Origin: Octopus sinensis
Lineage: Eukaryota
Direction of reading: 5' to 3'
Length of the DNA: 64,000 bases
NCBI RefSeq assembly: GCF_006345805.1
Contig: NC_043012.1
Span: forward strand, 28,520,001 to 28,584,000
Below the pieces are notes generated by a model, which did no database searches, had not been told where the DNA came from, and saw only the letters and a list, made by a program, of their open reading frames with translations. Below are positions 2,542-51,391 of this stretch, piece after piece. Position numbers and translations under genes: made by a program. How positions within the stretch are numbered: position 1 is the stretch's first letter; every line of letters begins with the position of its first letter.

Positions 2542-5500
2542 TTGAACCAAATTCTGACTGAAAAATCAGCCACTGGTTCAACTCTGCCCAACACACAGGA
2601 GCTGGACGTATCCCACAACCGGGATATTCCAACAGATGGCCGTCCATGCCCGTCATCAAATAACCAACAGAAAAAGAATGAAAAATGGTCTAGGGAAGAT
2701 AATAAGGAAGTTCTTACGGCCTTCTACCATGCCATATATTTCCCCACAGATAAATCTAACACTATACAAACCTACATAAACTGGAGACAGAAACACCCTG
2801 AAGTCAGACCCTACATAGACAATAACAAACTTGCCAACGTCAGAAGAAACATTATAAAAAAAAAATTACTGACTGAAGTAGAGATTGATCAAATCAAACA
2901 AGCAGTAACGGATAAAAACAACGAAGCCGCAGCTAAAGAAGATAATGCAGAGGAAATAATTATAGACCAGTCCAGGGCTGATAAAAATGCAGTAAGGATT
3001 GAAAGAGTTAGTATAACTGATAGGCAAAGTGAAATACTCACTGAACCAATCATAAACACTAAGACAAATGAACATGAAATAGAAGAAAGTCACACAAATA
3101 TTGACCCAACTGAACTACGTGAACTAAAGAATCAAATCATGATTGAATGGCTGAAACTTAAAGAAACCAGTATGGATGAACGCAATACACTCCCAAGAAT
3201 CCGCAACTCTAACCAAAACATGAAAATAATTGGTAAAATCCGCCTTGCACTTAAGGATATAATTTCAGCTAATGAAATTTAGTCCAACCCATGCTAGCAT
3301 GGAAAACGGACGCTAAACGATGATGATGATGATGATGTTAATATCACAGATCTCAACCACCTGTACTATGCATCCGCGAAAATCTCAACGATCCTATGTG
3401 GTGAAAAGATTAGAAAACGGCAACATTCCCACAAAAAGGCTTCTTGGCAAGAGCGTATCCAACATCAAATTAAGCTACTTAGGTCTGACGTTGAATGTTT
3501 GAAAAATCTTAAGGTTGACAAGACTACCAAACCTACAAAAACCCAAAAATTAAAGAGAAAATATATGAAAACTATACTTGATATTGATGCCACCATAGAA
3601 ACCATCAAGCAAAAGGTATCTGCTAAAGCCGCCCGCATAGCGAGGTATGAAAAGCGTGTTACATTCTTCAAGGACAACAACATGTTAAAAAATAACCCCA
3701 AAAATTTTTACAGGAAGATAGGGAAAACACCAGTTACTGTAAAGTCTGTACCATCAAAAGACGAAGTGCACGGTTTTTTTAAAAATAAAATTTGGGCAGA
3801 AGAAAAAACACAAAACGAAAAGGCCCCTTGGATTGATAGAATAGCTACGGACTTGTACTCCTTAGAGGAGCAAAAGAGGGAGGGTGTCAAGGTAGAAGAT
3901 GTAAGATCTACTCTCAGGAGGTCAAGCAAATGGAAGTCTCCAGGAAAGGATAAAATTCCTAACTTCTGGTTGAATGCCTTCCCAGAGAGCCATGAACTGC
4001 TAACAGAACTTTACAATGATGTTTTGCAACTCCCTAGTAGGATGCCTGCTTGGCTAGTTAAATGGTTTAACATTCTTGCTCCCAAAAAGTGAAGAAACAA
4101 ATGAACCAAAAAACTATAGACCCATAACCTGCTTAACAACCATGTATAAAACGCTAACATCTGTCCTGACGGAATATACCTATAGTTTTTTAATAGACAG
4201 CAGCATATTCCCTAATGAACAAAAAGGATGTAAACGTGGGTCCTATGGTTGTAAAGATCAGCTACTCATCAATAAGATGATCTTAGAAGATTGTCACAAA
4301 CGATACAAAAATTTGTCAATAGCCTGGATAGACTATAAAAAGGCTTTTGATAGCCTACCACAGCTGGATAAAGAAATGCCTAGAAATGTACAAAATAGCG
4401 CCTACTCTGCGAAACTTTGTCTGTAAGTATGAGATCATGGAGAACCACACTAACTTTGAACTGTGACGATGAATTTCTAAATGCTGGTGATGTAAAAATT
4501 TCATGTGGCATTTTCCAGGGCGACTCACTGTCACCACTCCTCTCTTGTTTAGCCTAAATACCTCTCTCAAAATTGCTCAATGACGCACAGTACGGATATA
4601 AAATGTTGTATAAAAATATAAATCATCTCATTTACATGGATGATTTAAAGCTCTTTGCAAAAAATGACCAACAACTCAAGGGCTTACTAACGATTGTTAA
4701 ACAATTCAGTGATGACATCAGAATGCAATTTGGCCTCGATAAATGTGCAAAAGCTACCTTTATCAAAGGAAAAATGACAGAAACATCTAACGTTTACCTC
4801 GACCAGCAGAATGTCATAAAAGAGTTAGACCCAGCAGAGAGCTACAAGTACCTAGGGGTAATTGAAGGGGACGGAATAAGGCATTCAGTGATGAAGGAAA
4901 GGATCAGGAGAGAATGTTATCGCAGAGTAAGAGCAATACTCAAGACAGAGCTGAATGCAAGAAACAGGATCGAAGCGATCATTGCTTTAGCCATACCAGT
5001 TGTGACTTACAGTTTCAATATTGTTAACTGGTCAATTACTGAAATATGTAATCTTGATAGAAAAATACGAAAACTGTTGACAATGCATAAAATGCACCAC
5101 CCTAAGGCAGATATAGATCGACTTTATCTACCAAGAAAAGAGAGAGGCCGCGGGCTTTTACAACTGGCAATAACAATGAAGATTGCTACAATTGGCCATG
5201 ACACCTACCTGAAAAACCCTGAGGACTGGATGTTAAAACTTGTCTCAAAACATGAAAACAAGAAAGCATCATACTCAGTAACAAAACAGGCAAAGGAATA
5301 TCTAAGTGAATTCCGAATACAACAAATTCCGGAATTAGACATACGAGAAACAAGCACAGAAAAAGTTAAGCGCATGAAAACCCGTGCTAAAACTGCTGCC
5401 TTAGATATTCTGAATGGTAAATGGCAAGAAAAACCTCTCAATGGCAAATACCCATAGAGAATGAATAATGCAGATGTTGACAAAGCCCTGGCCCATCAAT

Positions 5501-6060
5501 GGCTAACGGCCTCTGGCTTAAAATCTGAAACAGAAGGGTTTATCATAGCAGCTCAAGATCAATGCCTACCTACAAGGAACTACCAGGTCAACATATTAAA
5601 GAACAGCAGTAGCCCAACATGTCGTGTATGTCAACAACAAAATGAAACCATTGATCATCTTGACTCCAAGTGCAGTCTTCTTGCGTCTACAGAATATCTC
5701 AACAGGCATGATAGAGCTGCACAATATATTAACTGGGTAATTTGCAAAAGCCTGGACTTGCCCCATGATAAAAACTGGTGGGAACACAAACTACCTCCAG
5801 TGCTTGAAAATGATCACATCTCACTCCTCTGGAACTTCACCATTCAAACTGACAGAAAGATAGACGCGAATAGGCCAGACATCATAGTAAAAGACTTCAG
5901 ACAAAAAAAACATACCTCCTCATTGATATGACTGTCCCAATCGATATAAACGTATCTGTCAAGACCTACCAAAAACTGAGCAAATATAAAGATCTGGAAA
6001 TAGAAATCAGCAAAATGTGGACTAAAACAATACCTGTTGTCATAGGTGCCCTGGGAATGA
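2542..6060 (+). mobile_element. R4/Dong-like non-LTR retrotransposon (RT + restriction-like endonuclease), copy A, near full ORF, disrupted
   Basis: ORFs 2542-5931: KWSREDNKE N-terminus, YRPITCL, EQKGC, WIDYKKAFDS, GIFQGDSLSP (frameshifted), HLIYMDDLKLF, YKYLG, CRVC..ETIDH..C..RHD, RPDII, VIGALG; frameshifts, stop at 5455-5457, SINE insert at 3283. Confidence 0.92.
3283..3337 (+). mobile_element. 3' tail fragment of (GAT)n-tailed SINE inserted in the R4 ORF
   Basis: gtccaacccatgctagcatggaaaacggacgctaaac(gat)n matches the 3' end of 52174-52485; removal restores NEI-NITD. Confidence 0.85.
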
Positions 6061-6066
6061 CAGCGA

Positions 6067-7592
6067 TAATTCAATCATTTGTTATTCATGGATGACCTCA
6101 AACTTACTTTATGGTAAAGATGAAGCCCAAGTCAGTTCCCTCGTTGATACGGTGTATACCTTTAGTGCTGATATCAGAATGGAGTTCGGACTGAGAAAGT
6201 GTGGTATGTTAGTCTTGAAGAGAGGCAAAATCAAATGTATGGACGGGCTAGCGATACCGTCGGGGGAGGTTATGAAGCAGATAGAAGTATAGAGACTATA
6301 AGTACTTGGGGATTTTGGAAATGGATAAATTGATGGAGGAAAAAGTGACAGAAAAATTTAAGGTGGAGTACTTGCGCAGACTGAGACTGATCCTTAAGTC
6401 GGAATTAAACGGACGAATAAGATTGAAGCTATCAACACTTGAGCGGTTTTACTCCTTAGATATGGAGCAGGAGAAATAGTATGGACAGCAGACGAACTAA
6501 ACAACTTAGACAGAAAGACAAGGAAGTTGCTAACTAGATATGGGTCACTCCACCCGAAAAGTGACACAGACAGATTGTACGTACCAAGAAAAAGAGGAGA
6601 AGAGGACTTATTGGATGCGAACACAGAAGAAAACAACACTGCCTGGTATGTAAAAAATGCCACAGAACTGCTATTATTAGAATAAGGTCAGGGTCGTGTA
6701 GGATTAAAGATTGCAAAGATAAAGCACTATACAAGAAATTGAAAATGAATAAAACTGAAAATAGGTGGGTAAAGAAAAGAATGCATGGTCAATTTCATAG
6801 GAATGTTGAAGACAGACAGATGTGGATGACTAAAAGTGATTTAAAACCAGAAACGGAGACTCTAATCTGTGCTGCCCAAGAGCAAGCACTAAGAACAAAC
6901 CACATAAAATACAGAATAGACAAAACATTAGAAAATGATAAGTACAGAATCTGTAGACAAAATGGTGAAACCCTGTGGCATATTACCAGCCAATGCATGC
7001 CACTAGCTCAGAAGGAATATAATAGACGTCACGACAATATAGCCAGGCTTATCCATTGGACACTTTGCAACAAGTATGGACTTGACAGAGCAAAAAATTG
7101 GTACGATCACAAACCCGAAGTCAACATCGAACATAAAAATGCAAAGATCCTGTGGGATTTTATGATTCAGTGCGACCATGAGATAGAGAATAGGAAGCCA
7201 GACATAGTCTTAATCGAGAAAGAAAACAAACTATACTGGATCATAGATATAGCATTCCCAGCTGACAACGTATGCGATAAGGAAGAAAGAAAAGTGGAGA
7301 GATGTGACAGGTTAGCTTGGGAAGTTAAGAGTTGTGGCCGATGAAAAAGGTAGCAGTAGTACCAATAATTGTCGGAGCCCTGGGGACAGTGAGCAAAAAT
7401 CTCGAGAAGTACGTGAAACAAATAGGGGCTGCAATAAGGGTGAAGCACTTGCAGAAGACTGCACTGCTTGGAACCACTCGAATACTCTGGAAGGTGCTCG
7501 AAAAATAAGAGGTTTCACCTTAGTTCACTGATAGTGAACAGCTGACACCGTAGTACATCTCCAGCGTTAGAAGCTGTGCAAAGGCAATGATA

Positions 7593-9678: not shown

Positions 9679-9823
9679 AAGTAGCTTGCTTACCAACCAC
9701 ATGATTTCGGGTTCAGTCCCACTGTGTGGCACCTTGGGAAAGTGTCTTCTACTATAGCCTTGGGCCAACTAAAGCGTTGTGAATAGATTTGGCAGACAGA
9801 AACTGGAAATAAGCTCGTTGTCG
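9679..9823 (+). mobile_element. tRNA-derived SINE, family A
   Basis: ggttcagtcccactgtgtggcaccttggg..gtgtcttctactatagcc, B-box-like GGTTCAGTCCC, ends at (TA)n; five copies in window. Confidence 0.85.
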
Positions 9824-10733: not shown

Positions 10734-12949
10734 AGTTCATCTCGGGGCGTTGCCCAGGCGCTATGACCTACAAGCAATTGCATTAGTTGCTCCTTTCTTG
10801 ATTGATAGAATCGGCACAGCTGATATATAGTTAATGGAATAGTGGAAGTTATTGTTTGTTTAAAAATGAAGGGCGAGGTTGCAATTTGCGTGGGTTTGTA
10901 TGAAAGTGCATTCTGTTCTTAAGGATCAGAAACTATGTATTGTTTCATCGTATAAAAAGAGGTTAATACGATTTTGACCTGAAATCACGTTTTCAAAATA
11001 CCAATTTCCCCCCATCCCCACCGCAATTTCTTATTTTGTAACTTTTTCAATTTTTTTTGTTGTTGTTTACGTAGAAAAATAGAGAGATTACGAATCTGGA
11101 ATATATATATTTTATAGTTTAATTTTTCTTAAAAAAAAGAACACACGATGCCCCTTCCCCCAGCTCGCTCACCCATCGCCTACCAGCTTTCAAAAAGCTA
11201 AAATCTCCCAATCTTTCACTTTTGTCTGATGTTTCCCGCATGCGTAGAATTCTACTGAAATAGTAGACTTAAAACATACCAGACTACCACCAGCAAACCC
11301 GACATGTTAGAAACAACAGTTAAATGACATTATTTCTGAAGAAACTCCCCCGCTTTCCAAAAAGCTAAAAGTGAAACATTGGGAGTGTGTAGCTTTTCGA
11401 AAGCGGTGAGGTAATGGGTAAAATTCCTAAAGATTCATACTCTGTATTTTCTCCATGGATTACCAAGAATAAAAATTCCAAAAAAGTAAAAAATGAATTT
11501 GTTGTGGAGATGGAGAAAATTAAAATATTGAGAACGTGTTTTCTGGGTGAAATCCTTGTCTCTTGTATCGCAAACACAGGTATCGGAAGAAATTTAGGAA
11601 AAAAATAAGGTGGGGATGGAGATGTTACCTCTGACATGCTAGACAGAAGAGGTAAAGGACAGAATTTCTGTGAAAACGTCCTTTTAAGTTTATATCGAAG
11701 ATTAGGTTTTTAAATACGCTAATCACAAACACAAATTACACAACAGAAAAATATTATTTCAGTTGGATTTGAGCTGTAAATTTGCGCGTGCACAACGTAA
11801 TTTACACAGAAGTTTTTCTTAGAGTGTGTGTATGTGTTAGTGCATGTGGATGTATGTGTGTGTGTGTGTGTGTGTGAAGGAAGTTATTTTATAGCATTCT
11901 TTTGTTTTTGAGGCAAAGTTGTCAACTCGACATATATGGGATCATATGATTGTTCGTTAATTTCTGTAAAACTGTTTTAATTTCTGTATGCTTTGAAGAG
12001 AGCAGAAATTGAAAGAGAGGATAAAGTGAAAAGGCGACATTTGCTTTGACGTGAGAGGAAAAAGTAAAAGAGAGGAGAAAGTGTAAGATGTAGGTATATA
12101 TGAAATGGACGACTATGAGGGAGAGAGAGTGAGCGAGAGAGAGAGTGAATGTATGAGTGAAGGTATGTGTTGTGATGTATGGATTTTTTGGCATATATGA
12201 GTAAGTGGCACTCACTAATTCTCTCTCTCTCTCTCTCTCACATATCTTTCATACACTTGTAGGCGGGAGTAAAAAATACGCACACCACCCGTTTTCAGCG
12301 TAAACACCGGGAGTGCGTATTCTTTACCTTCACTCATAATTACATATGCATACATCTTTGTGTGTGTGAGAGAGAGAGAGAGAGAGGCTGTATTTCCTCA
12401 TAACATATAGAAAAATGGATCGCTTTTAATGCCATTTTTTGGTTGTGGCTTATTTTAATAGAATTTTTATGTGTATATTTTCATAATTGTTTGTCTGAGT
12501 AGAATTCTACGCATGCATGAAACATCGGACGAAAGTGAAACGTTAGAAGAAAACCGAAATATTTTCCGAAAATGACCTCAAAATCGTGCAACCCAACATA
12601 GTTGCCGAGGTTATTTTAGTTGTAAAAGAGAGTTGTTGAGTCAAAAACAGTTTATTTGGCTGATATATAATAAGTAGTTTTCTTTATTATAATACATATG
12701 TGACTAGTATGGAGAAACATTACTTTCATTATTCACACATCGCTATTCTCATAATGCAACACTTCGTAATTTTGGTTCATATTGAAAGTGTGAAACTATT
12801 TTCATTTTCGTAAAGGAAACTGGTCGTTGTAGAGAAGTGTATTTGAAATAACTATAACTGGTTGTTGCGATAACGTAGAAAATATGTAAATGAAAATAAA
12901 GTTTATTTGGCAAGGATAATTGATTCGATTGTTCTGGTCTTTAACGTCA

Positions 12950-14889: not shown

Positions 14890-16040
14890 ACGTAGCAATT
14901 TGGCATTTAATCTCCTTCAAAATAGTTCCTTTCGGAAGCCACACACTTAAACCAGTGCCGTTTTCATTGATGGAGGCATTCCCGGAACTCGTTTTCTGGG
15001 ATAATCAGCAGCTGCCTCGTCGCTTTCACTTTGATTTCCTCGACATCCTGAAATCTTCCTTTCAATCAGGATTTGATTTTTGGAAAGAGGGAAAAATCAC
15101 AAGGGCGAGATCTGGGGGAAAACGGTGGCTGTCAGACCTAGGGAATGCTGTGTCTATCCACAAACTGCTGCACCAGCTGCACTGAATGGGGAGATGTGTT
15201 GTCATGGTGCAATTGCCACTCACCGGACGCATGCAATTGTGGCCTTTTCCGACAAATAGCATTCCGCAAACATCACGGTAGTACTCCTTGTTTACTGCCT
15301 GACCAGGTGGAGCATACTCATGATGAACAATCTCCTTGTAGTCGAAGAAAACGGTCAATAATGTCTTATTCATTCGTGCTTTCTTCGGTCTCGGAGAGGT
15401 TGGGGTTTTTACTGCGAAAACTCTGCGTTTGTTTCGAGATCATAGCCATAGACCCATGTTTCATCACCCGTTATGACCGTTTTCAAAAAGTTTTCATCGT
15501 TCTCGACATAATCAAGATCTTGTGCAACTGAATCCCGAGTGCCGGTTTGGTCAGCTGAAAGCAGTTTTAACACAAACTTGGTAGACACTCTTCTCATAGC
15601 CAAATCTTCAGTGATAATGGACTGAATTGAACCGTAACTAATCTGCACATCCCCTGGTAACTCACGGATAGTGATTCGATGATTTCCCCTCACAGTTGCA
15701 CGCCCATCTGTGATGTAATTCTCAGTTCTGCTGGTTGGGAGTCTCCCAGAACGTTCATCAATATCGACATTTTTTCGGCCATCTTGGAATGTCTGAACCA
15801 CTCGTACTCTTGTGTGCAGCTCATACACTCATACTCTCCTCTCTATAGACTTTCTGCAACTTTGCGTAGGCGTCTGGTCAAGTATCGCCAAGCTTTTGTC
15901 AAAATTTGATGCAGATTCTATGCTCAACTTTGTCTTGGTCAATGTGACGATCACGCGTTACACGCGTTCATGCCAAGCACTGCTGTAAACAGCGGAAGTG
16001 AGCTAGAACTTTAAAGCTTAGTGCGCATGCACAGCAAAGT
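14890..16040 (-). pseudogene. Mariner (Tc1/mariner) transposase pseudogene
   Basis: KVEHRICIKF, ERSGR, ITGDETWVYGYD, LLTVFFDYK, HDNAP, PPDLA, YFEGD*; frameshifts; TIRs not identified. Confidence 0.9.
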
Positions 16041-16102
16041 TCAAGGTCAATCTGTGCCAAGTGGCTTCACTCTACGTATATATACATGTGTGTGTGTGTG
16101 TG

Positions 16103-16213
16103 TACGACAGGATTCATTCAGTTTTCGTCACTCAAATCCACTCACAAGGCTTTGGTTGGCCCGAGACTATAGTAGAAGACAATTACCCAAGGTGTGGTTG
16201 GGAAGCAAACTTC
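16103..16213 (-). mobile_element. SINE family A, 3' part (interrupted by 3.7 kb of inserts)
   Basis: aatccactcacaaggctttggttggcccgagactatagtagaagac..ccaaggtg tggttgggaagcaaacttc. Confidence 0.85.
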
Positions 16214-18239
16214 ATTATTTCATTAAATTTGCCATAAGGGTAGTACACAGACTAAGGAAGCTTGCAGGCTGGACACGGACATTAATGAGATGAATGATAA
16301 TGATACAAGGATGATAAGGATGGGAGAAGACAAAAAGTGCCCTCCGACTTTTGCTTCTCTAAAACATTGTTCTTTTTAAAATAGCATACTGAGGCAATAA
16401 ACGTCTTACATAGTTCAGTAAGACAAAACACATCAACGAGGCAATAATCCTCTTACTTTTTGCATTATAAAAGTCCTTTTGAGGCAATACACCTCTTACA
16501 CAAGAATACATTTATTTGCTTTTCTGTCCGACCGGGCTCCTCGCTTCTTCGAAGCACCTAGTCGGTTTCAAGCCGGACCACTTTGTCATAGATCTAAAGG
16601 AGTCCGCTGGGAAGGAATTCATTATCCTGCACAGATCGGTTTCCAATATTACCTCCGAGCCACCTGCGAATGCCACTCAGGGTTCTCCGTGCAGGCAGAA
16701 GCCCCTCCCACCGGCCTTTCCTTTCAAACTTCCTAACCAAGTTCTGCAATAACCCTTCCTTGTGAAAGAGGACCACAAATTGCTCCTCCAGTGCACACCC
16801 GCCGAAGGAGCATCGGGACACGCCGGCAGTGTGTCACAAACTGCCGGCAATATCCCGTTTTTCTTTTTTTCTTCTTTTTCCCTTGGCCCACGGGAGGATG
16901 GTGTTCTTCTACGTTGTCCTGCAGGTCCTCCCTTCCTCCCGCAGCCCTCGGGTCCTTCGTTTGCCCACTTTTCATTTTCTTCCTTTTTTAGAGGAGGTTT
17001 CCACCTCCTCGATTTCCTTCTTCTCTCCCTCCAATGAGCGAGCAGGGAGTGGTGCTTCTATTAACTGCTCCTGGACCCTATTTTGGTCCTTGGGGCAGTT
17101 CTTCTTGATATGGCCGGTTTCCAGGCACAGGTGACACTTGGGGGGAGGGGGCGTCCCTTGAGCATCACCGGATACCTAGACTTGGCCATCCTTAAAAAAT
17201 CTGGAAAAACCAGACTTTTGGCTGATTGGGTCCATAGGGTCAAAACTGCTTTTTACCCTTCCCAATCAGCCGCAGGCAATATTTTAACATCGAGCAGCTT
17301 GGTACTGCTACCACCCAGACCCCAGCGGATAGAATCCTCGATCCACCCGGGCTCAATTCCGAGTGGCAAACCGTAGATTCAATCCCTCGTCAACTTCTTC
17401 CCACAATAAGTGGGAAGGAACAGAATTTCACTGCCTTCCAGGGTCTGGCTTGCTAATTCCCAAGCTTCTTCGGGGGAGTCAAATAGCAACCACACCGTTG
17501 CATATTTGACCCCCCGTGAAACATATTTAATAGCTGGCATATACTCTGCCAGCTCTTTTATAATTATGGTTTTCGGGAAGACGGCTATGGTATCGAGGGA
17601 CTTGAAATAAGTCCTCAACACCACCGTCTTCCTTTCAAACTCTTCAAGCCGTGTTTTGGAAGGTGTTAATTCCCATTCAACAAATTTCTTTGCCATTTCA
17701 ACATAAGAGTCCAAATAAATTCCACAATTTTTTTTAATAATAAAGAAAGAAAAACAAAAAGAAAAACTTAACAGAAGGGAAGAAAAAATAAAAATAAACA
17801 GTTCAATACAGTTTTTTTCAAATAAATGATAGAAGAGAACGAGAGTTCTAAACACAGCAAAGAAAATTATTTTTCGGCCGTATGGTACTCCTGGCCTTCG
17901 CAGACAATCCTATGTGTAATCCTTGAAGTTATTTTTTCAAAAGACTTCCACGCAGGCACATAACAGTTCTTGAAAATAATTGAGAATTTAATTATTCTCA
18001 AAAACAATTAATTTGGAGACAACTCCACACAGTAGCTCTCACAATTATGTGAGAAAAACATACGTCTCTACCGCAGGCAAACAAAAAGCTCCGAATCCAG
18101 TGAGAACTCCTTGCTTGTACAAAAAAATAAAGCTTACAGACAACAAATCCCACTGGACTCAAAAAGCAAAAAGTCTTACCCTACAATAGAGCGTCTTTGA
18201 AATACAATTTTCGCCAGCGTGGCGACTTCAACGGTACAA
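16214..18239 (-). mobile_element. ORF1-only Tx1/L1-derived element (HAL1-like), unit 1, ORF frameshifted
   Basis: ATG near 17696 MAKKFVEWEL..VVLRTY..FDSPEEA..CHLCLETGHIKKNC knuckle; no APE/RT; 3' end TTTAATGAAATAA; flanked by target copies. Confidence 0.8.
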
Positions 18240-18253
18240 GGAAGACAAGCTTC

Positions 18254-19929
18254 TTTATTTCATTAAATTGGCCATATAGGCCTTACAAAGAGAAGCTTGT
18301 GGGCTGGACATGGACAAGATGAGATGAAATGAAACAAAATGATACGGATGAGAGGGATGTCGGCGCCCACCGACCGACAAACCCTCGAATACAAAGTTTC
18401 TTACAACAATTCTCTTTGTCAGGTCTCCCAAGCAAAGTGTCTTGCCGCCTGCAGACAACTCTGCATCGACAAGTCGGGGCCTGCAAAGAGGAAAGCAAAT
18501 TCTTCCTTGTCAAATGTCGCTGTGACCTTTGACAAAATTCTTTCCGTTACTACCTCCGCAGCCACCTGCTGCGGAGGCCATATCAGACTACTTGAGCAGA
18601 CCGAGTACACACGTTCTTGGTTACCCAAGCCGTCCCAAAATTTACTCACCGTCCCTCCCTCGTGGTAAAGGAGGACTAATACCTCCTCTTCACAGGAAGG
18701 GACCTCACACTGCTCCGTCAGTGGCACACTTCCCACTGACGGAGCCCTATCCGCAGGTGGCACACATCCCACCTGCGGCTCCGTCGGCGGCCCAGGAACA
18801 TCCGCCGACCGTCCTCTGCTCCTCTTTTTCCCCTTTCTTTTTGAGGCTGCGTCGACAGACACGGGTGGTCGCTCCAATGAGGGGACGGTGGGCACATTTT
18901 CTTTCTCATGCTCCAGGGCCTCACCACGGCCCCCTGAACAGTTCCTTTTGATATGGCCAGGCTCCAGGCACAGGTGACACTTGGGGAGGGTGCGTCCCTC
19001 AAGTATCACCGGGTACCTGTACCCGACCATTTTTTGGAAGTCCGGGAACATCATGTCTCCCACGGCCACCGGGGTCCACAGGGTCGAAGTTGCCTTTGAC
19101 ACCTCCCAGTCGACCGCGAGAGCAATCTTCACACTCAATAGCGTGGGACCGCTATCCCTCAGGCCTCGCCGGATGGTCTTCTCGATCCATCCTGCCTCCG
19201 TGTGGAGTGACTTGGAGTAGGTTCTCAACACCACTGTCCTATCTTCACGGTCTTTCAACCACTTTTTGGGCGGTATAATCTCCCACTCCAAAACTTTGTC
19301 TTTTTTCATTGCCATGTTTCTTTTTTTTTTTTTTGAAAATATATTCAAAATAAAACTTAAAAAGCGAGAAGAAAAAAGAAATCAAAAGAAAGTCACAATA
19401 AACAAAAAGGAGAAAGTCAAATAAAATTTAGAACAACACGGCAAAAAAATCTTCCGGCCATTCGGTACTCCCGGCCTAGGTTGAACCCGGAATACCACAA
19501 CTGGAACACAACTTCCACAAAAATTGATATACAAATTGTTCAATCTTCGGAGGCAAAGACACTCCCCCAAACAGCAGTTCTCACAATTATTTTAAAGTTC
19601 TTCAAAAGGCACAATACAAGCAATAATTCTCATAATTAAGTGAGAAAAATATTCACTCAACATAAACCGAAGACGAATACTCCCCCAAACAAAAATTCTC
19701 ACAATTCAGCGAGAAAAATTATTTGCCCCATGTAGGCTGAACCAGAATTCTGAATCCAGTAGGACTTCCTGCCTGTACAAAAACAATTCTCAACAAAAAT
19801 TCTCACTGGACCCAAAAAACAGAATCTTACCTTACAATGGAGCTTCAAACTTTTTCAATTCGAGACGGTTTCAAAAGCATGTCTCACCTCTTTGGTGCCG
19901 AACACCACAATTATTCGCACATGCGCAGT
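18254..19929 (-). mobile_element. ORF1-only Tx1/L1-derived element (HAL1-like), unit 2
   Basis: Shares 5' UTR blocks, ORF1 and 3' end TTTAATGAAATAAA with unit 1; no APE/RT. Confidence 0.82.
18419..19315 (-). CDS. Intact gag-like ORF1 (~298 aa from MAMKK) with CX2CX4HX4C knuckle and unassigned C-terminal domain
   Basis: Open frame in ORF track (18419-19348); YPVILEGRTLPKCHLCLEPGHIKRNC, K/R-rich linker, then EEEVLVLLYHEG.. Confidence 0.75.
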   Translation of the reverse strand: MAMKKDKVLEWEIIPPKKWLKDREDRTVVLRTYSKSLHTEAGWIEKTIRRGLRDSGPTLLSVKIALAVDWEVSKATSTLWTPVAVGDMMFPDFQKMVGYRYPVILEGRTLPKCHLCLEPGHIKRNCSGGRGEALEHEKENVPTVPSLERPPVSVDAASKRKGKKRSRGRSADVPGPPTEPQVGCVPPADRAPSVGSVPLTEQCEVPSCEEEVLVLLYHEGGTVSKFWDGLGNQERVYSVCSSSLIWPPQQVAAEVVTERILSKVTATFDKEEFAFLFAGPDLSMQSCLQAARHFAWET

Positions 19930-19960
19930 GGAAGCAAGCTTCTTACCTCACAGCCACGCT
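19930..19960 (-). mobile_element. SINE family A, 5' head
   Basis: Reverse complement gcgtggctgtgaggtaagaagcttgcttcc matches the heads at 37668, 44631, 51213. Confidence 0.85.
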
Positions 19961-25094: not shown

Positions 25095-26601
25095 ACCGAG
25101 CGCCACGCATCTTGGAGGCATTTTTCTGCTTCTGCAGGAGTAGGAAATTTAAGTTTCCTCTCCTTGGGAAAAACACATTTATACATAATGGTTTTTAGTT
25201 TAGAGTTAGTTTTTTTCCTCCTCACTAAAGGACATAACACCTGGTTTTACAATATCATTTTGGCACTAGAGATCTTTATCTTTCAGCTCTTGTATCAAAT
25301 GCCCTAAAAAAAGATAGAGAGTTGTTGTGGTTCTTTGTTATTGTTGCTGTTGTTGCTTTCCACACAGGTTTTGTTGTTATTACTACTGTTGGCATTGATA
25401 ACTGCATTCTTGTTTTCGTTTTCGTTATCGCTGTTATCATTGCTGCTGCTGCTTGGATGTTTGAATCCGTGGGGCCCCGGATCACCTTGGAAATAAGGTC
25501 ACCTTTTAAACACCTGAGGTCCTCGGTGTTGGTGTCGGTAGGAGGGCCGGTTGCTCCTCTTTTCTCTCTTTAGGGCAAGAGACCCTGAGGTGACTTTGGT
25601 CACCACAAAAGTAAAAACATTTTGGGACCGTCAAGCAGGTTTATCAAGTCGGAGATGGCATTTATGCTCTCTTGTTCAATTTGCACAAGAAGCTCCATCC
25701 CCTGACCCGACCAATTTTGTTGGTGTAACCAGTGTCCCTCGAGGATTGTGGCGGTGTCCTTTACGTCTAGGAAGACCACCTCCACCAGCCAGCATTTACT
25801 GATTTGTGGTGGCAACTCCCCAATTTTTATACGTGTAAGGCACCGATTAAGATATGTCGACACGAATAAAAATTCATCTGTTTTTAGAGGCACTGTGGAA
25901 TACTGTTTTGCTTTTTCTTCTGTTGAAAATGCACTTCCACTGTGCTGAAGCGTCTTCCTCCCGTCACATAGGTCTTTTGTTTCCATATAGGCTTTGGAAT
26001 GAACTCCAGGTGTTGCTGAATTGCCTGATGGACCCATTTCTTCAAAACTTTATGAGGAGTCTTTTTGTTCGTCTCTCATATTAAATTCTGTGGGGCGTTA
26101 AGGAGAACATTGTTCCCATCGCTCCTTAACAGTTCATTTGCCTCTTTTATCGCGTCTAAAGTAATATTTATTTGTTTCTTTGTCTTGCCGCTGAGGCGAA
26201 ACTGTTGCCGCTTGGTTTGTCGTTATTCTTTTTGCTTGAGTGTTCTTGTTCGTTCGCGTTGTCAGTGTTTTTTTGTATTCTCTGTTTATGGTGGTCGTGT
26301 TGCCCTTGGTGCTAGTGCTGGTGCTGTTCAGAGTGGGGAAATCCTCGCGGTATTGGTCATCAGAACAGCCACTGCCACGCTCCTCGTCAAACAAGAAAAC
26401 AAGAAATATTTTTTAAAAAGGACTGTAAACCCGAAATCTCGCCCCTAAAAAAAGGGGGAATTCTATCAACAAGATCCTTGCCGGTGCACAACCAGAGGTT
26501 CAAAAACTCAACGATTCAAAAAAAGGCAACACTTCTAAAAAAAAAACAACAACAAAACTACCAACTCACAGAACACAAAAATCCACGTCTTTCCTCGCCG
26601 G
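25095..26601 (-). mobile_element. Tx1-like LINE 5' end and ORF1 (degenerate)
   Basis: T/N-rich N-terminus, FSTEEKA..FVSTYLNRCLTRIKIG (homologous to unit 1 at 17.4 kb), frameshifted C..CGDQSHLRVSC knuckle. Confidence 0.75.
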
Positions 26602-37667: not shown

Positions 37668-37829
37668 AGGTCCAGGCGTGACTGTGTAATAAGACTTGCT
37701 TCCCAACCACAAAGCTCCGGGTATAGTCCTACTGCATGGCACTATTGTCAAGAATCTGCTACTATATCCTCGGGCCGACCAAAGACTTGTGAGTGGATTT
37801 GGTAGGCGGAAACTGAAAGAACCCTCCGT
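37668..37829 (+). mobile_element. SINE family A
   Basis: aggcgtgactgtgt..gacttgcttcccaaccac..gggccgaccaaagacttgtgagtggatttggtag. Confidence 0.85.
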
Positions 37830-37979
37830 GTATATATGTATATATATAATCTTCGCTTGTTTATTACTGTTTTTATTTTATTATTCATGTCCACTGTCCG
37901 GTAATTTTTCGTCACACATCAGTGATCCCTTCAGTGACACTTAAGCGACACACACGAAAACGAAGAGAATTTAATATGA

Positions 37980-41066: not shown

Positions 41067-42310
41067 TATATATAAATGCGTTTCCGTAAACACAAAACGA
41101 CCGGAGTAAGCGAGTCAGACAGACGCGGAAGGAGCACTTAAAGGAACAATGCCCGATATATCTCGAGAGGCAAGTAATTTCCAAGCATTTCAGTGCTCTC
41201 CAAGAATGAAGCCTTGGCCGTCAAACTCTCCGTCGTTTCCTGTCGGAGCGATAAGTATGTTCTCTATCCATCATATTTAAAAAAAAGAAGGTCAGTGGGA
41301 GATATCAAGGATTCCACCTGAAGCGAATTGCATTCATTGTCATGGAAGTAACAGTCTCGTCAAAAAATAGTCGGAGATTAGTGTGGGAATGCTACTCCAC
41401 ATCAAACCAGGCACTATCCACAAGGTCCCAAATCTCATTCATCTTCTGGGGGTGGTGGAGGAACTGCATAATACAGTTGAGGGCAGAAGGCTACCATGCC
41501 ACCTACGTGGGGAGACTGACTACTTGAGAGCTTTTGTCTTCAACAGAAGACGGAGCCACTTCTTCATAACGTTGAAGTAAAAGTAATTTTTGCTATAAAT
41601 CAATACATAAAGAGTTATTAGTAATTAAAGCTTGAAAATTTTGGTAATTTTAGTCAATTGCAAGCCACGAACACATTCATGCTTTTCTCTTTTGAATTAA
41701 CATAAGCATTTATTAACATGCAAGAAAATTACCGGAGAACTTTCACGCTAAAAATAACAGCTAAATAAGATTTATTGACATGAAAGAAAATTACAGCAGA
41801 CATTGTTTACAAATAGTGACATATGCAAGACGGAGAAGTTGCTGTCTGCCAGTAGAGAGGGAAAGAGAAAGGAATGCACGGTGCTGACTAGAAAGAAAGA
41901 AAAGATAAAGGTGGGTCTGCTCTGATTGGCTGTAAACAAATGAGTTCATTACTGGGGTCTGGAACTCACGTGGGAAAAAATTTCACCTCCAGGTGGAGTT
42001 GCAGTATGGCTTAGGAAAGGCCTGGTACGGAAGATCTTCCTGGGCCCGGATGGTAAGTTAGTGATCCTGGATGTGAGCAGTAGCAAAGATACTGCTTTTA
42101 TATTAGTCGCTGTGTACGCCCCGACTGGGGTGGGTCAGCAGACGTTTTCTATCAGATGTCTTGCTTTTTAGTGCTAGTGACCGATTGGAATGCCATATCA
42201 GACTCACACCTGGATAGGATGCGGCTAACCAATAGAGGGTGTAAGTGTAAAAGCCTCACAAACCTGCTCATTGCTTCCAACTGGCTGATGGATTTCCCGA
42301 ATGCGCCAGT
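40400..42310 (+). mobile_element. Degenerate Tx1-like LINE 5' half (ORF1 and start of APE)
   Basis: N/T-rich N-terminus ending KNTFAAIV, YVLYPSYLKKR, EGRRLPCHLRGE knuckle relic, GGVAVWLRKG..DGKLVILD..LVAVYAP..DWNA. Confidence 0.7.
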
Positions 42311-44630: not shown

Positions 44631-44778
44631 TGTGCGGTAAGAAACTTGCTTTCCAACTACATGATTTCGAGTTCAGTTCCACTGCGTGGCACCTTGGGCA
44701 AGTGTCTTTTACTATAGCCTGGGGCCGACTAAAGCCTTGTGGGGGGATTTGGCAACAGAAACAGGAAAGAACCCGTCA
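44631..44778 (+). mobile_element. SINE family A
   Basis: gtgcggtaagaaacttgctttcc..gttcagttccactgcgtggcaccttgggcaagtgtc. Confidence 0.85.
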
Positions 44779-44813
44779 AATATATATGTATATATATATA
44801 TGTATATATATAT

Positions 44814-46591: not shown

Positions 46592-49062
46592 TTAAAAGCC
46601 AGATAAGTGTAACGCCGACTGTAAGAGCCCGTTTACCATCCGGCCTCTGGCAAACAAAATATGGAAGAGTTCGGAGACACAAAGGTTGCACTGTCTTCTG
46701 CCCCTATCAAATGGGAGGGCCACCGACAAAATTGACCATTCCAGCCTATAGCTTAAGTTCGTATCCTTCAGTCGCCATATTAGCTTACTGAGTCCCGTGG
46801 TCTGGCGCTTGTTCACGTCCCGAAAAGTTGCGTAATGGTTGGAGACACGCAAAGACAATCTTGAGGATGATGCCCCTACATAAGCGAAGACATCTGAGTC
46901 CGTGTAAACCTTGCATTGGTAGACGGCGTTTTTGATCTTGGAGTTCGCCGACGTGAATCTTAATCTGCTAGGATTAGTTTCTGAAATTAGAACTGCGTTC
47001 CTGTCACTATATTCGTTCCGAGACCTGCAGCCGCTTACTACTCTATTTTCCACTACGTCACTATTAACTATAGGAATAACCCCTGATTCTCCACTATCTA
47101 TCAGAGTGCTGTCATTGCTACTGCCCGTGGTGCTGCTATTGCGGGAAATGATGCTGGGGATGCTATTGGGGCTCTCTACCCTACTCCCATTGTTACCGTC
47201 AACCACAACACCCCTATTTATAACTATACCCCTAGTGGGTACTCCCTGGCTGGAGCTGAGATTATGTGTCACTGTACTGGCTCTCATATCATTATTACTA
47301 CTATAATTATTCCTACTGAGCATTAAACCGGGAGCGGAAGAGGCTGTGCCTCCGGAAAAAGGTGATAGGGTCTTAGTAAGTAGCCTATTATTATGGGAGG
47401 CGATTATCTGGGCGAGGTTTTTAGTGTTGGAGAAAGCTATCCTAACTTTATGCGAGTTAACCGTGGAGTAATATTTGGAATTTCTGGGGAAGTTATTGGC
47501 GATGGCTTGTCTAAACATGAGGGGGAGGTTAGATCTAATCTGCTTACCAAAGGGGATTACAAACCATATATGCTTATTCCTATCAGTGTGATGGGTCGGG
47601 ACGCCAGCTCTCGCATTCGGGTGGGTGATTCTCGGATGAATAACGGGTCTTGGGTTAGTGTAAGACCTCCGGACCGATAATTATCCTTGTTCGCTAACTT
47701 AAATGCGGGAGCGACTACCCCGGCATCCGCCGCGCTCCCGTCCTTACTTAAAATGTTAATGTTATTATATACGGCCCTATCCTGATGACCGAATGATGGC
47801 ATCGGAAGGGCCGGATCAATATAAATTACCTTCTGCCTATAACCGGCCTTGGATAGTGCGGCGTTATAAAATTCCGCTTTCTGCATAAAAATATCGGCAC
47901 TGGCGGACAAGCCAGACAATCTTAGAGAGATGTTTTTAACCAAATTGTCTGTTACAGTTTTGGCATGATTTGAGAAGACACTGACATACTTCAAATTAGT
48001 GGAAGGCTTATGGTAAGGGCAGTATGAGTCGCTATTAAGGTTAAGTGTAACGTCTAGGAAATTAGCCTTGGTGAGTTCATTATCAAAAACTATACTCATG
48101 CCCATTCTATTAAAAAACCTAGCTAACCTGCTCTTAGTTTTCTGCACTATTCTGTTCGTGGTGTTTTGCAGGTAAAACAGACAATCGTCACGATACAGGC
48201 CGCCCGCGATTCCGGGAATTGGTCGGACAATTCGTAGAGAATATATATTCCGACCAAATCGGCTATCTGCGCACTATCCGAACTACCCATAGGCACATCA
48301 AATTCATTGGGAGTATCTTTACGGATCCACAACTTATTATCAAACTTAATAAACGATTTCCTGGCAACTAAAATGATATCTATCTCTTCTCTGGTGAGGC
48401 CAGCCTTGTTGTGAGCATGCCAGAGGGCCTTATTTAGCACACTAGGGTTAATCGAGGGGTAGAAGCTGGCGATATCAAACTGAATGAACCTAGTACGGTT
48501 CTTATTGGGGATGGAAGAGAACCACTTCACTACCTGCGAGGAGTTGGCCCAGAGGCTGAGCTTCAGCTTGTTTACTAAACTAGGGATATATTTATCTAAA
48601 ATGTACTTACTGATTATCCCGATATCAGATCTAGCAGGGCATATGAGTCTTAGCGCTGGGTTGGTGTGGAAGTTAGGTTTATGGTCCTTCACTATAAATC
48701 TGGGTTGCTTGGGGCTAAGCGGCTGAGTTCTCATTTGAATTCGGTGTTTAAATATTATTTCCTTAATTTCCAAGTTTACCTTCCTCAGGGTACTCCAATT
48801 GGTTTTTCTATAATTTTTCTTGATCTCTTTACCGAGTAAATCTAGGTACTGCTTAATGGGCATCTTGTATGTGTTCCTGGTCTTGTCGGACTGGACCAGG
48901 ACTCCGTCCGTTCTATTAATGTCCTTGGTAATTTTATCTAGGTATCTGAGGTGGGCATTTCTCCTGGGTGACTTCCTGAACTTAATCTTTCTAACTATGT
49001 CCCACAAGTCGCCCTCAAACTTCTTCAGTCTTCGGTTCGGTGGCGGCGTATCCAATGTTTTA
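46592..49062 (-). pseudogene. PLE polyprotein: RT, linker, GIY-YIG; two frameshifts (~48205, ~47600)
   Basis: KDHKPNF, FDIASFYPSI, PMGSSDSA, GGLYRDDC (after frameshift), FLDVTL, HIWFVIPF, AVYQC..YVG, GLSKLIWRLK, CNLC. Confidence 0.9.
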
Positions 49063-49532
49063 AAAGGCAGGCTTAGATGACAAGGCAGGCTTAGATGAAC
49101 ACACACACACATAAAACATAATATATATATATTTTTTTTCTTTCTGCCACCCAACGGTTATCACGGCAGTAGCCACTGACAGCCGAACGATCAAACGCAC
49201 ACACGTACACAAAAAATGTTTTCTACCCCTACGCCAACACACACATATATAGAACAGTATACACACACACACGTCTCTAAGTAGATTTTTTCTCGCCCCT
49301 TATAAAACATCCAATATTCCTTAAATAGTCAGAACTTTATTCTCGGTCACAAAGAACATCTATACACCCTCACCCACATGATTGACCGATGCCTGACCCG
49401 TTGAATTCTTCAGCCACCGGTTCTCAACATACACTGATAAACAGTTTCGCCATGGGCTTTTAGGAGCATAGTTCGATTTGTTTTTGCTCCGCCTCTGTTC
49501 TGTTTTTGTTTTTCCAACGGATTTCCTTTTTT

Positions 49533-51212: not shown

Positions 51213-51382
51213 TAGCGCAGGTAAGACGTTGTGTGGTAAGGAGCTTACTTCTTAACCACTTGGTTCCGGGTTAAGTCCCACTGCGTGGCACCTTGTGGGA
51301 GAAAATGTCTTCCACTATAGCCTCGGGCAGACTAAAACCTTGTGAGTGGATTTAGTTGACGGAAGCTGAAAGAAGCCTGTTG
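51213..51382 (+). mobile_element. SINE family A
   Basis: gtgtggtaaggagcttacttc..ccgggttaagtcccactgcgtggcacc..ttgtgagtggatttag. Confidence 0.85.
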
Positions 51383-51391
51383 TATATATAC

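Follow-up and report, generated by a model that had tools for sequence, protein, structure and literature searches.

Probable target-specific, ORF1-only retroposons inserted in tandem at a single site of an octopus SINE

A stretch of 64,000 nucleotides of the Octopus sinensis genome (contig NC_043012.1, positions 28,520,001 to 28,584,000; hereafter the window, whose first letter is position 1) contains on its minus strand, at 16103-19960, a short interspersed element (SINE) of ~165 bp that is interrupted after consensus position 31 by two co-oriented elements, designated A and B (Table 1). The evidence presented below makes it probable that A and B are target-specific, non-autonomous retroposons of octopods that derive from a long interspersed element (LINE), carry only the first of its open reading frames (ORF1), belong to different sublineages and were inserted sequentially at one and the same site of the SINE.

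Read in the sense direction, the locus consists of the SINE head, GAAGCTTGCTTCC, element B, GAAGCTTGTCTTCC, element A, GAAGTTTGCTTCC and the SINE body, which runs to ~16103 and is followed by a (CA)n tail. The head reads ...GCGTGGCTGTGAGGTAA just before GAAGCTTGCTTCC, ending ...GGTAA (19960->19930). The 13-mer GAAGCTTGCTTCC corresponds to positions 19-31 of the SINE consensus and recurs at the three junctions of the split SINE (3/3), the copies differing from one another by just one substitution and one 1-bp insertion; the second copy lies between the two elements, where the 3' end of B meets the 5' end of A, and no further SINE sequence surrounds it. With at most one mismatch, the 13-mer was found in the window at the two outer junctions only, 0.06 chance matches being expected. 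Both elements end ...TATGGC(A/C)AATTTAATGAAATAA, and the 3' end motif TATGGCNAATTTAATGAAATAA is restricted to these junctions within the 64 kb (0.02 chance matches expected). When the outer flanks were joined in silico, the product aligned colinearly with full-length SINEs of the window and of other O. sinensis loci, save for a 30-bp internal deletion. A sequence-only reading of the window had described a SINE split by two co-oriented elements of ~2.0 and ~1.7 kb, with a 13-mer at three junctions and both insertions at the same 13-bp site. Direct reading together with scripted feature location bore out this layout, and the shared site agrees both with the identity of the target copies and with the rebuilt empty site.

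The host repeat is a short, dispersed, multicopy SINE with differing flanks, of which four further copies were found in the window and three in a second O. sinensis locus (L002, see below), with 84-96% identity to the consensus. In an octopus genome, ~11.6% of the sequence has been attributed to SINEs (PMC13282606). In unoccupied copies the target sequence is often a variant one, such as GTAGCTTGTTTACC or GAAACTTGCTTTC. The 30 bp missing from the interrupted copy are TGGTTCCGGGTTCAGTCCCACTGCGTGGCA, a B-box-like segment located between CCACA and CCTTGGG, with CA/CA microhomology at its edges. The proposal that the SINE is tRNA-derived and that the site lies between its A and B boxes was not confirmed: ARAGORN detected no tRNA in the window and Rfam none at the gathering score, a near-consensus (95%) copy of the SINE gave no tRNA match even at E<=10, and its head was recognised neither by the Rfam tRNA model nor by ARAGORN. 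The A-box-like TGGCTGTGTGG and B-box-like GGTTCAGTCCC motifs are discernible by eye only.

Two further O. sinensis loci on different chromosomes, L001 (CM016886.1) and L002 (CM016865.1), were obtained through database relatives of the elements. In L001 a SINE head (L001:9459-9489) ending ...ggcatggctgtgtggtaagtagcttgcttcc is followed by an element start reading tgtgcatgcg, and in L002 a head (L002:15710-15740) ending ...ggcgttgccgtgtggtaagaagtttgcttcc is followed by actgcgcatgtgcg, so that both elements begin directly after SINE position 31, as B does. The sequences upstream of the two heads are unrelated, and L001 and L002 therefore lie in different SINE copies. Four independent 5' junctions (A, B, L001 and L002) thus fall at one SINE nucleotide, and two of the insertions are complete, with 13-bp duplications. 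We roughly estimate the probability that a given position of the ~165-bp SINE is hit at random at p <= ~7e-4, and three repeats of such a coincidence are therefore not credible. These loci, which start at the identical nucleotide, support the earlier suggestion that the elements form a site-specific family.

It could be argued that the 31-bp SINE head belongs to the element itself and travels with it in transcripts initiated within the SINE, in which case insertion could take place anywhere and the 5' junction would be no evidence of targeting. L001 and L002, which show the head upstream and no SINE body downstream, would fit such a view, as would the co-transcription with the target that is known for target-specific LINEs and SINEU (PMC4494074). 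However, A is headless, being flanked only by the 13/14-bp repeat and then by the SINE body from position 19; this repeat also borders B at either end, and what precedes the head is not found again downstream of B. In addition, runs of at least five T occur ~110 nt into the 5' untranslated region (UTR) and would stop RNA polymerase III (Pol III), which argues against Pol III read-through from the SINE. This explanation appears very improbable and was rejected; A and B are ordinary insertions with target-site duplications (TSDs).

The fact that A and B are adjacent and co-oriented, with only a copy of the flanking repeat between them, would also be expected if a single insertion had undergone local tandem duplication or unequal recombination, followed by divergence in place. 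A and B can be aligned over their full length, with many indels and an identity of 71% (mean column identity, pairwise alignment) or 58% (four-way alignment), whereas the flanking 13-mers are near-identical. Moreover, in the four-way alignment the 5' UTR of B is 90% identical to that of L002, on another O. sinensis chromosome, and only ~60% identical to that of A; the ORF region of A is nearest to that of L001 (72%). In-place divergence cannot yield this pattern of identities, and a local duplication, already discounted in the sequence-only reading, is hardly conceivable and effectively refuted. The difference of ~30-40% between A and B, the nearly equal 13-mers and the affinity of the B 5' UTR to L002 indicate instead, on sequence comparison, that the two elements diverged before arriving at this site. 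It is worth adding that B is a mosaic, since its ORF and 3' part are only 57% identical to L002 (window 18254-19929 vs L002:15741-17765), which suggests an exchange of 5' UTRs or other modules, or recombination, between sublineages.

Element B has a 5' UTR of 614 nt (19929->19316), which starts with ACTGCGCATGTGCG, followed by an open ORF1 that lacks ~78 codons present in other copies, corresponding to most of the first of two RRM-like domains (an internal deletion of ~235 bp in the pairwise alignment). Its CCHC knuckle, CHLCLEPGHIKRNC, is located at 18938-18979 (Pfam zf-CCHC, E=0.013), and a conserved C-terminal block begins at 18691 (EEEVLVLLYHEGG...). Element A has a 5' UTR of 543 nt and an ORF1 that starts at 17696, full in extent and interrupted by stops and frameshifts, in which both RRM-like domains are kept and which shows 63% amino acid identity to the O. 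sinensis protein P0001 over residues 1-205; its knuckle lies at 17095-17136 and its C-terminal block starts at 16788. The conserved peptide block, located after a hairpin described below, comprises EEEVLVLLYHEGG, EEQFVVLFHKEGL and DDLVIFFHKGGA or EDELLIFFYRSGE, then ...W(P/H)(P/S)Q..., and shares its reading frame with ORF1 in B and with the knuckle in A. In its natural form, ORF1 would therefore probably extend to ~165 nt or less from the 3' end, with no space for a second reading frame (ORF2). The 3' UTR of A contains ~35-bp repeats (16391-16498); a tandem-repeat search of the UTRs rendered none of note.

A Pfam search of the three sense frames of 16101-19960 detected only one weak zf-CCHC match per element, with no signal of a reverse transcriptase (RT) or an apurinic-type endonuclease (APE), no Exo_endo_phos or other endonuclease, and no match to Transposase_22 in A or B. 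The absence of APE and RT noticed at first sight is thus confirmed, and the question then raised about ORF2 in other copies is answered in the same sense by L002, which covers the whole layout, with the C-terminal block and, in degenerate form, the 3' end (cttatggatatttgaatg), and is likewise devoid of ORF2; L001 is truncated after the hairpin. An ORF2-less layout from 5' UTR to 3' region is therefore common to three diverged copies (A, B and L002), representing at least three sublineages.

The 3' end shared by A and B is ~125-135 nt long and has no poly(A) tail, ...AATTTAATGAAATAA abutting the target copy directly, with one variable base (A in B, T in A) between the conserved ...GAAATAA and the duplication. 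This region is presumed to be the recognition site for the RT of a helper element; no conserved stable fold was found in it (-4.4 kcal/mol). At the other terminus, full-length copies open with (C)ACTGCGCATGTGCG or TGTGCATGCG, an NRF1-like palindrome of the GCGCATGCGC type (window 19908-19929, minus strand; L002:15741-15760; L001:9490-9505), and similar motifs occur at ~16025 and ~20240 of the window and at L001:11533. As a lead only, the palindrome hints at an internal RNA polymerase II (Pol II) promoter.

The closest protein relatives of the element ORF are two O. sinensis proteins only. Homology searches with the B ORF, with P0001 and with a 12-sequence profile, the last dominated by low-complexity words, retrieved only P0001, P0002 and P0031, with no other member of the family and no ORF2-linked relative, and an exact-protein look-up had neither the B ORF (309-aa and 298-aa forms) nor P0031 on record. 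P0002, a gene model annotated as 'K02A2.6-like' (L002:10001-36638), is a chimera of the first ~45 ORF1 codons (L002:16402-16578) and an integrase (rve) exon located 19 kb away, probably an annotation artefact caused by transposon exons. A HMMER search of representatives rendered 47 distant ORF1-like proteins with 23-30% identity; ten distant relatives that were traced are mostly of cephalopod origin (O. sinensis, O. bimaculoides, O. vulgaris and Argonauta hians), with 4/10 coming from read or metagenome assemblies. In the AlphaFold model of P0001, an intact O. sinensis homologue, two RRM-like domains precede the knuckle (predicted local distance difference test ~72 overall, good over residues 11-200), and the top Protein Data Bank (PDB) fold matches retrieved by Foldseek with this model are tandem-RRM proteins (E~2e-5); a PDB sequence search with P0001 rendered nothing meaningful. 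The zf-CCHC match, weak in A and B, is above the cut-off in 3/10 relatives scanned. The A/B family therefore presents the RRM and CCHC features of the 'type I ORF1p', which has been linked to plant L1 and animal Tx1 elements (PMC5203782).

The hairpin of A lies just past the basic tail of ORF1, and in B its homologue is a pair of tandem perfect hairpins with 10-bp and 12-bp stems, located in the ORF1 linker (z = -7.3; 0/200 shuffles as stable). L001 has a single hairpin at ~10853-10895 (z = -4.6), and that of L002 is decayed. The stems vary between lineages by compensated changes, for example CCGGCAGT/ACTGCCGG vs CCGTCAGT/ACTGACGG. As to its role, RNA packaging, a translation signal or RT recognition could be guessed. 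Ratios of nonsynonymous to synonymous substitution (dN/dS) of 0.15-0.31 between copies, at dS of 0.5-1.6, indicate that ORF1 has been under purifying selection. The ORF1-only layout and these ratios fit a lineage of the kind of HAL1, the ORF1-only derivatives of mammalian L1, whose own ORF1p is important for its spread.

An element of this family would thus consist of a 5' UTR of ~0.5-0.7 kb, with a probable internal Pol II promoter, an ORF1 predicted to encode two RRM-like domains, a CCHC knuckle, a basic linker and the conserved C-terminal block, and the ~125-135-nt 3' end without poly(A). Having no endonuclease or RT of its own, it would obtain both from a helper, and its insertion would probably take place by target-primed reverse transcription, specific to one site of an abundant SINE, which would make it a helper-dependent parasite of another parasite. 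The 13-bp duplication implies staggered nicks. The helper endonuclease would nick the bottom strand opposite SINE position 18/19, the helper RT would copy the element RNA from its 3' end, the top strand would be nicked 13 nt (or 12) downstream, after position 31, and repair would leave GAAGCTTGCTTCC duplicated; should the first base of the elements be C, the stagger would be 12 bp. Since the TSD regenerates the target at either end of the insert, the same site can be used again, and an element landing in either rebuilt copy would give the arrangement head-TSD-B-TSD-A-TSD-body, with A or B as the first arrival. The target holds an inverted repeat, GAAGC-TT-GCTTC, and each of the inferred nicks lies immediately 3' of GCTTC(C) on its own strand, a placement that would suit symmetric recognition.

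By analogy, the most likely helper would be an APE-type LINE with a specific target, from the L1-Tx1 group. The arguments for Tx1 amount to a close analogy, which comprises target-specific insertion generating TSDs, TSD sandwiches, the type I ORF1 and the reported activity of L1-Tx1 elements in Octopus, 421 recent insertions of L1-Tx1 families having been counted in O. vulgaris (PMC13282606). It can also be the case that the helper belongs to another clade, either a Dong-R4 type with a restriction-like endonuclease (RLE), an R1-like element or some other APE LINE, the rest of the reading standing unchanged. In O. vulgaris, no LINE group is more active than Dong-R4, for which 1129 recent insertions were counted (PMC13282606), target-specific LINEs are found in the early-branching (RLE) and R1 groups as well as in Tx1 (PMC4640811), the combination of RRM and CCHC is not exclusive to Tx1, as Jockey-superfamily ORF1s, R1 included, join both modules (PMC4120745), and A and B offer no ORF2 for a phylogeny. 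On the other side, the insertion into a transposon, the TSD of 13-16 bp and the tandem sandwiches match the Tx1-Mar/SINEU-3 case considered below, and the R1 clade is absent from the listed octopus LINE groups. To our knowledge, elements of the R4 clade have a single ORF and no RRM/CCHC ORF1, and an ORF1-bearing derivative of that clade is therefore unlikely. A helper outside Tx1 thus seems unlikely, although with a real share of the probability, and Dong-R4 is less likely than Tx1 as the donor.

Several observations weigh against the reading of A and B as a target-specific, ORF1-only family. Only four copies are available, and both junctions are seen in just two of them, A and B, which share one SINE; downstream of L001 and L002 the SINE body is missing, and the 3' parts of these two copies are truncated or degenerate. 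A is full of stops, most of the first RRM is missing from B, stops and frameshifts occur in L002, and in no single copy examined were a fully intact ORF1 and the C-terminal block seen together; just two family members are present in the protein databases. A nhmmer profile of the A/B 3' ends, run against 131 kb of octopus DNA (the window, L001 and L002), matched only A and B, so that the autonomous partner with the same 3' end that had been anticipated from the sequence did not appear, and a metagenome scan for the 3' end motif gave 99 hits, all of them chance matches with no likeness beyond the motif. Because no helper sharing the 3' end was found, trans-mobilisation and the Tx1 assignment are what we infer rather than what we observe. 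Finally, the low dN/dS could be an inheritance from selection in autonomous ancestors and not from ORF1-only lineages.

This last point, together with the lack of an ORF1-only master copy with a fully intact gene, would also be compatible with A and B being one-off, dead-on-arrival deletion products of an autonomous site-specific LINE, generated by internal deletion or template switching, with no self-propagating ORF1-only lineage behind them; LINE copies are often rearranged internally, and B itself bears the extra deletion of ~235 bp. Yet A, B and L002, which differ by 30-40%, all pass from the ORF1 C-terminal block to the 3' region with nothing ORF2-like between, and independent deletions would not have common boundaries. 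Furthermore, A and B each have their own target duplication, so that the ORF1-only form was insertion-competent at least twice. An origin as deletion products is accordingly improbable, and a target-specific, ORF1-only family remains the reading that we favour.

Each of the single traits of these elements has a counterpart in known systems. The crocodilian Tx1-Mar LINEs, and SINEU-3, which they mobilise, use one site of an abundant Mariner and generate a 16-bp TSD; the 'tandem insertions sandwiching a TSD' that they often form have been explained by sequential insertion (Kojima 2015, PMC4494074). The octopus elements resemble them in the targeting of a single site of an abundant transposon, the long TSD (16 bp there, 13 here) and the sequential tandem copies, and in the crocodilian case the non-autonomous passenger shares the target of its helper. 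Unlike SINEU-3, a ~170-bp SINE with a small nuclear RNA-derived head, the octopus passenger is 1.7-2.0 kb long and keeps an ORF1 under selection; its target is a SINE and not a Mariner, its host is a cephalopod, and a helper has been seen only in the Tx1-Mar case. Insertion of Utopia into U2 genes is a further case of tandem TSD sandwiches. Strict targets, transposons among them, are used by other APE-type LINEs, such as Tx1L in the Tx1D DNA transposon of Xenopus, Keno in U2 and Kibi/Koshi in microsatellites, which, unlike the octopus elements, are autonomous and carry ORF1 and ORF2.

The HAL1 ('half-L1') elements depend on a helper for ORF2p (PMC5753468, citing Smit 1999 and Bao & Jurka 2010). 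The sequence-only reading had proposed a HAL1-like family, and A and B are like HAL1 in being LINE-derived, in encoding ORF1p only, in their dependence on a helper and in an ORF1-only layout that extends across diverged sublineages; HAL1 was amplified as an ORF1-only lineage with many copies of one structure, and for the octopus elements a common structure was seen in three diverged copies (n=3), with ORF1 under purifying selection. The likeness does not go beyond this, since the ORF1 of HAL1 is of the coiled-coil/Transposase_22 kind (type II), and HAL1 ends in a poly(A) tail and is not target-specific. The octopus elements encode a type I ORF1 with two RRMs and a CCHC knuckle, end in a specific 3' sequence that is not poly(A) and use one target site. 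By this comparison they are analogues of HAL1 and not members. HeT-A, from Drosophila telomeres, is a further parallel, as it carries Gag/ORF1 only, without pol, TART and TAHRE acting as RT donors (PMC5537684). Like the octopus elements it is a Gag/ORF1-only non-LTR (long terminal repeat) element, strictly target-specific, arranged head-to-tail and with the RT provided by another element. However, HeT-A belongs to the Jockey group, joins chromosome ends without nicking or TSD, performs a host function and is targeted by its Gag, whereas the octopus elements use an internal 13-bp site with a TSD, implying nicking by an endonuclease. Transposon-targeting APE LINEs, TSD sandwiches, ORF1-only derivatives and an ORF1-only, target-specific borrower of RT are therefore known separately. 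In the literature searched, no SINE-targeting family of the Tx1 clade is reported, nor was the combination found of an ORF1-retaining non-autonomous element, a single SINE site, a cephalopod host and a covarying hairpin in the ORF1 linker; a description in Repbase is possible.

Table 1. Features of the nested insertion and SINE copies (window positions unless a locus is given)
Feature	Position	Strand	Basis
SINE 5' head, consensus positions ~2-31	19930..19960	-	blastn vs SINE consensus, 96.7% over positions 2-31; direct reading; empty-site rebuild
Target-site copy 1, GAAGCTTGCTTCC, last 13 bases of head	19930-19942	-	direct reading
Element B, 1676 bp	18254..19929	-	direct reading, ORF list, alignments
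B ORF1, open, 298 aa + stop	18419..19315	-	ORF list; 46% identity to O. sinensis P0001
B hairpins, two tandem, perfect	18713..18778 (18713-18744, 18751-18778)	-	RNAfold, -51.4 kcal/mol
B shared 3' terminal region	18254-18378	-	counterpart of the A region
Target-site copy 2, GAAGCTTGTCTTCC, 13-mer with 1-bp insertion	18240..18253	-	direct reading
Element A, 2026 bp	16214..18239	-	direct reading, ORF list, alignments
A hairpin, GGGATATTGCCGGCAGT-loop-ACTGCCGGCGTGTCCC	16815..16856	-	RNAfold, -30.9 kcal/mol, z = -5.9
A shared 3' terminal region, end TATGGCAAATTTAATGAAATAAT	16214..16348	-	nhmmer profile; motif search
Target-site copy 3, GAAGTTTGCTTCC, first 13 bases of SINE body	16201-16213	-	direct reading
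SINE 3' body, consensus 19 to ~159, with 30-bp internal deletion	16103..16213	-	blastn vs consensus and four other window SINE copies; empty-site rebuild
Other SINE copies	9679-9818, 37675-37837, 44631-44785, 51230-51389; L002:5840-6003		

Remnants of other retroelements and of a transposon were also noticed in the window. Just upstream of the split SINE on the same strand, at ~22615-20900, there is a degenerate LINE ORF2 with APE-like pieces and the N-terminal half of an RT, which contains RVDHTYLEAVLKLTGFGPVYRGWI...VKVNGHLSEPF and ends in microsatellites. Pfam was negative for this segment owing to frameshifts, and a PDB search gave a weak RT match to R2Bm (E=0.8); it is confirmed as an RT remnant, the match giving no clade. 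The idea that this LINE continues downstream of the SINE was rejected, since a Mariner-type transposase remnant is located there, directly downstream (15065-15957, minus strand; Pfam Transposase_1, E=1.2e-7). Degraded ORF1s of the RRM-RRM-CCHC superfamily were found at 25560-26177 (minus strand) and 41085-41553 (plus strand), one of them, that at 26177-25560, being 42-52% identical to the O. sinensis protein P0003 and the other showing ~40% identity to P0042; the window therefore contains several related families of LINE ORF1. No link to A or B was found for either the LINE remnant at 22615-20900 or the ORF1 at 26177-25560. Another LINE with broken ORFs (2542-7344, plus strand) encodes RVT_1 (4573-5457) and then zf-RVT (5461-5931); the RRM/CCHC type is not seen in its first ORF, and its 3' end differs from that of A and B. 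At 46592-49154 (minus strand), three consecutive ORFs of 196-335 aa with RT-like motifs discernible by eye (FDIASFYPSI) and no Pfam hit may represent a Penelope-like or other retroelement.

A stronger version of the proposal can be put forward only tentatively, and we consider it rather doubtful: that A and B belong to a self-sustaining ORF1-only lineage that has long been without ORF2, is selected for its own RNA-binding protein and covarying hairpin, and uses the SINE as its exclusive landing pad. If true, this would be a third-order parasite, which takes its RT from a LINE and its target from a SINE that is itself LINE-dependent. By analogy with the HeT-A Gag at fly telomeres, targeting may be aided by the element's own ORF1p, or by pairing of read-through RNA with the palindromic GAAGC-TT-GCTTC.

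Research on target-specific LINEs treats them as natural, programmable "safe-harbour" integrators, and forms with ORF1 alone show the minimal LINE that is able to spread. If confirmed, an ORF1-only family that hits one nucleotide of a SINE would mean that targeting is provided wholly in trans, or else by the RNA or by ORF1p, and that the needs of target-primed reverse transcription can be divided into separable parts. For annotation, split SINEs with a repeat of GAAGCTTGCTTCC would have to be treated as nested insertions, and tandem arrays of this kind would not represent new subfamilies. For the octopus itself, a repeat that makes up about a tenth of the genome would constitute a harmless landing pad, which would bear on how these animals tolerate a high activity of LINEs and SINEs.

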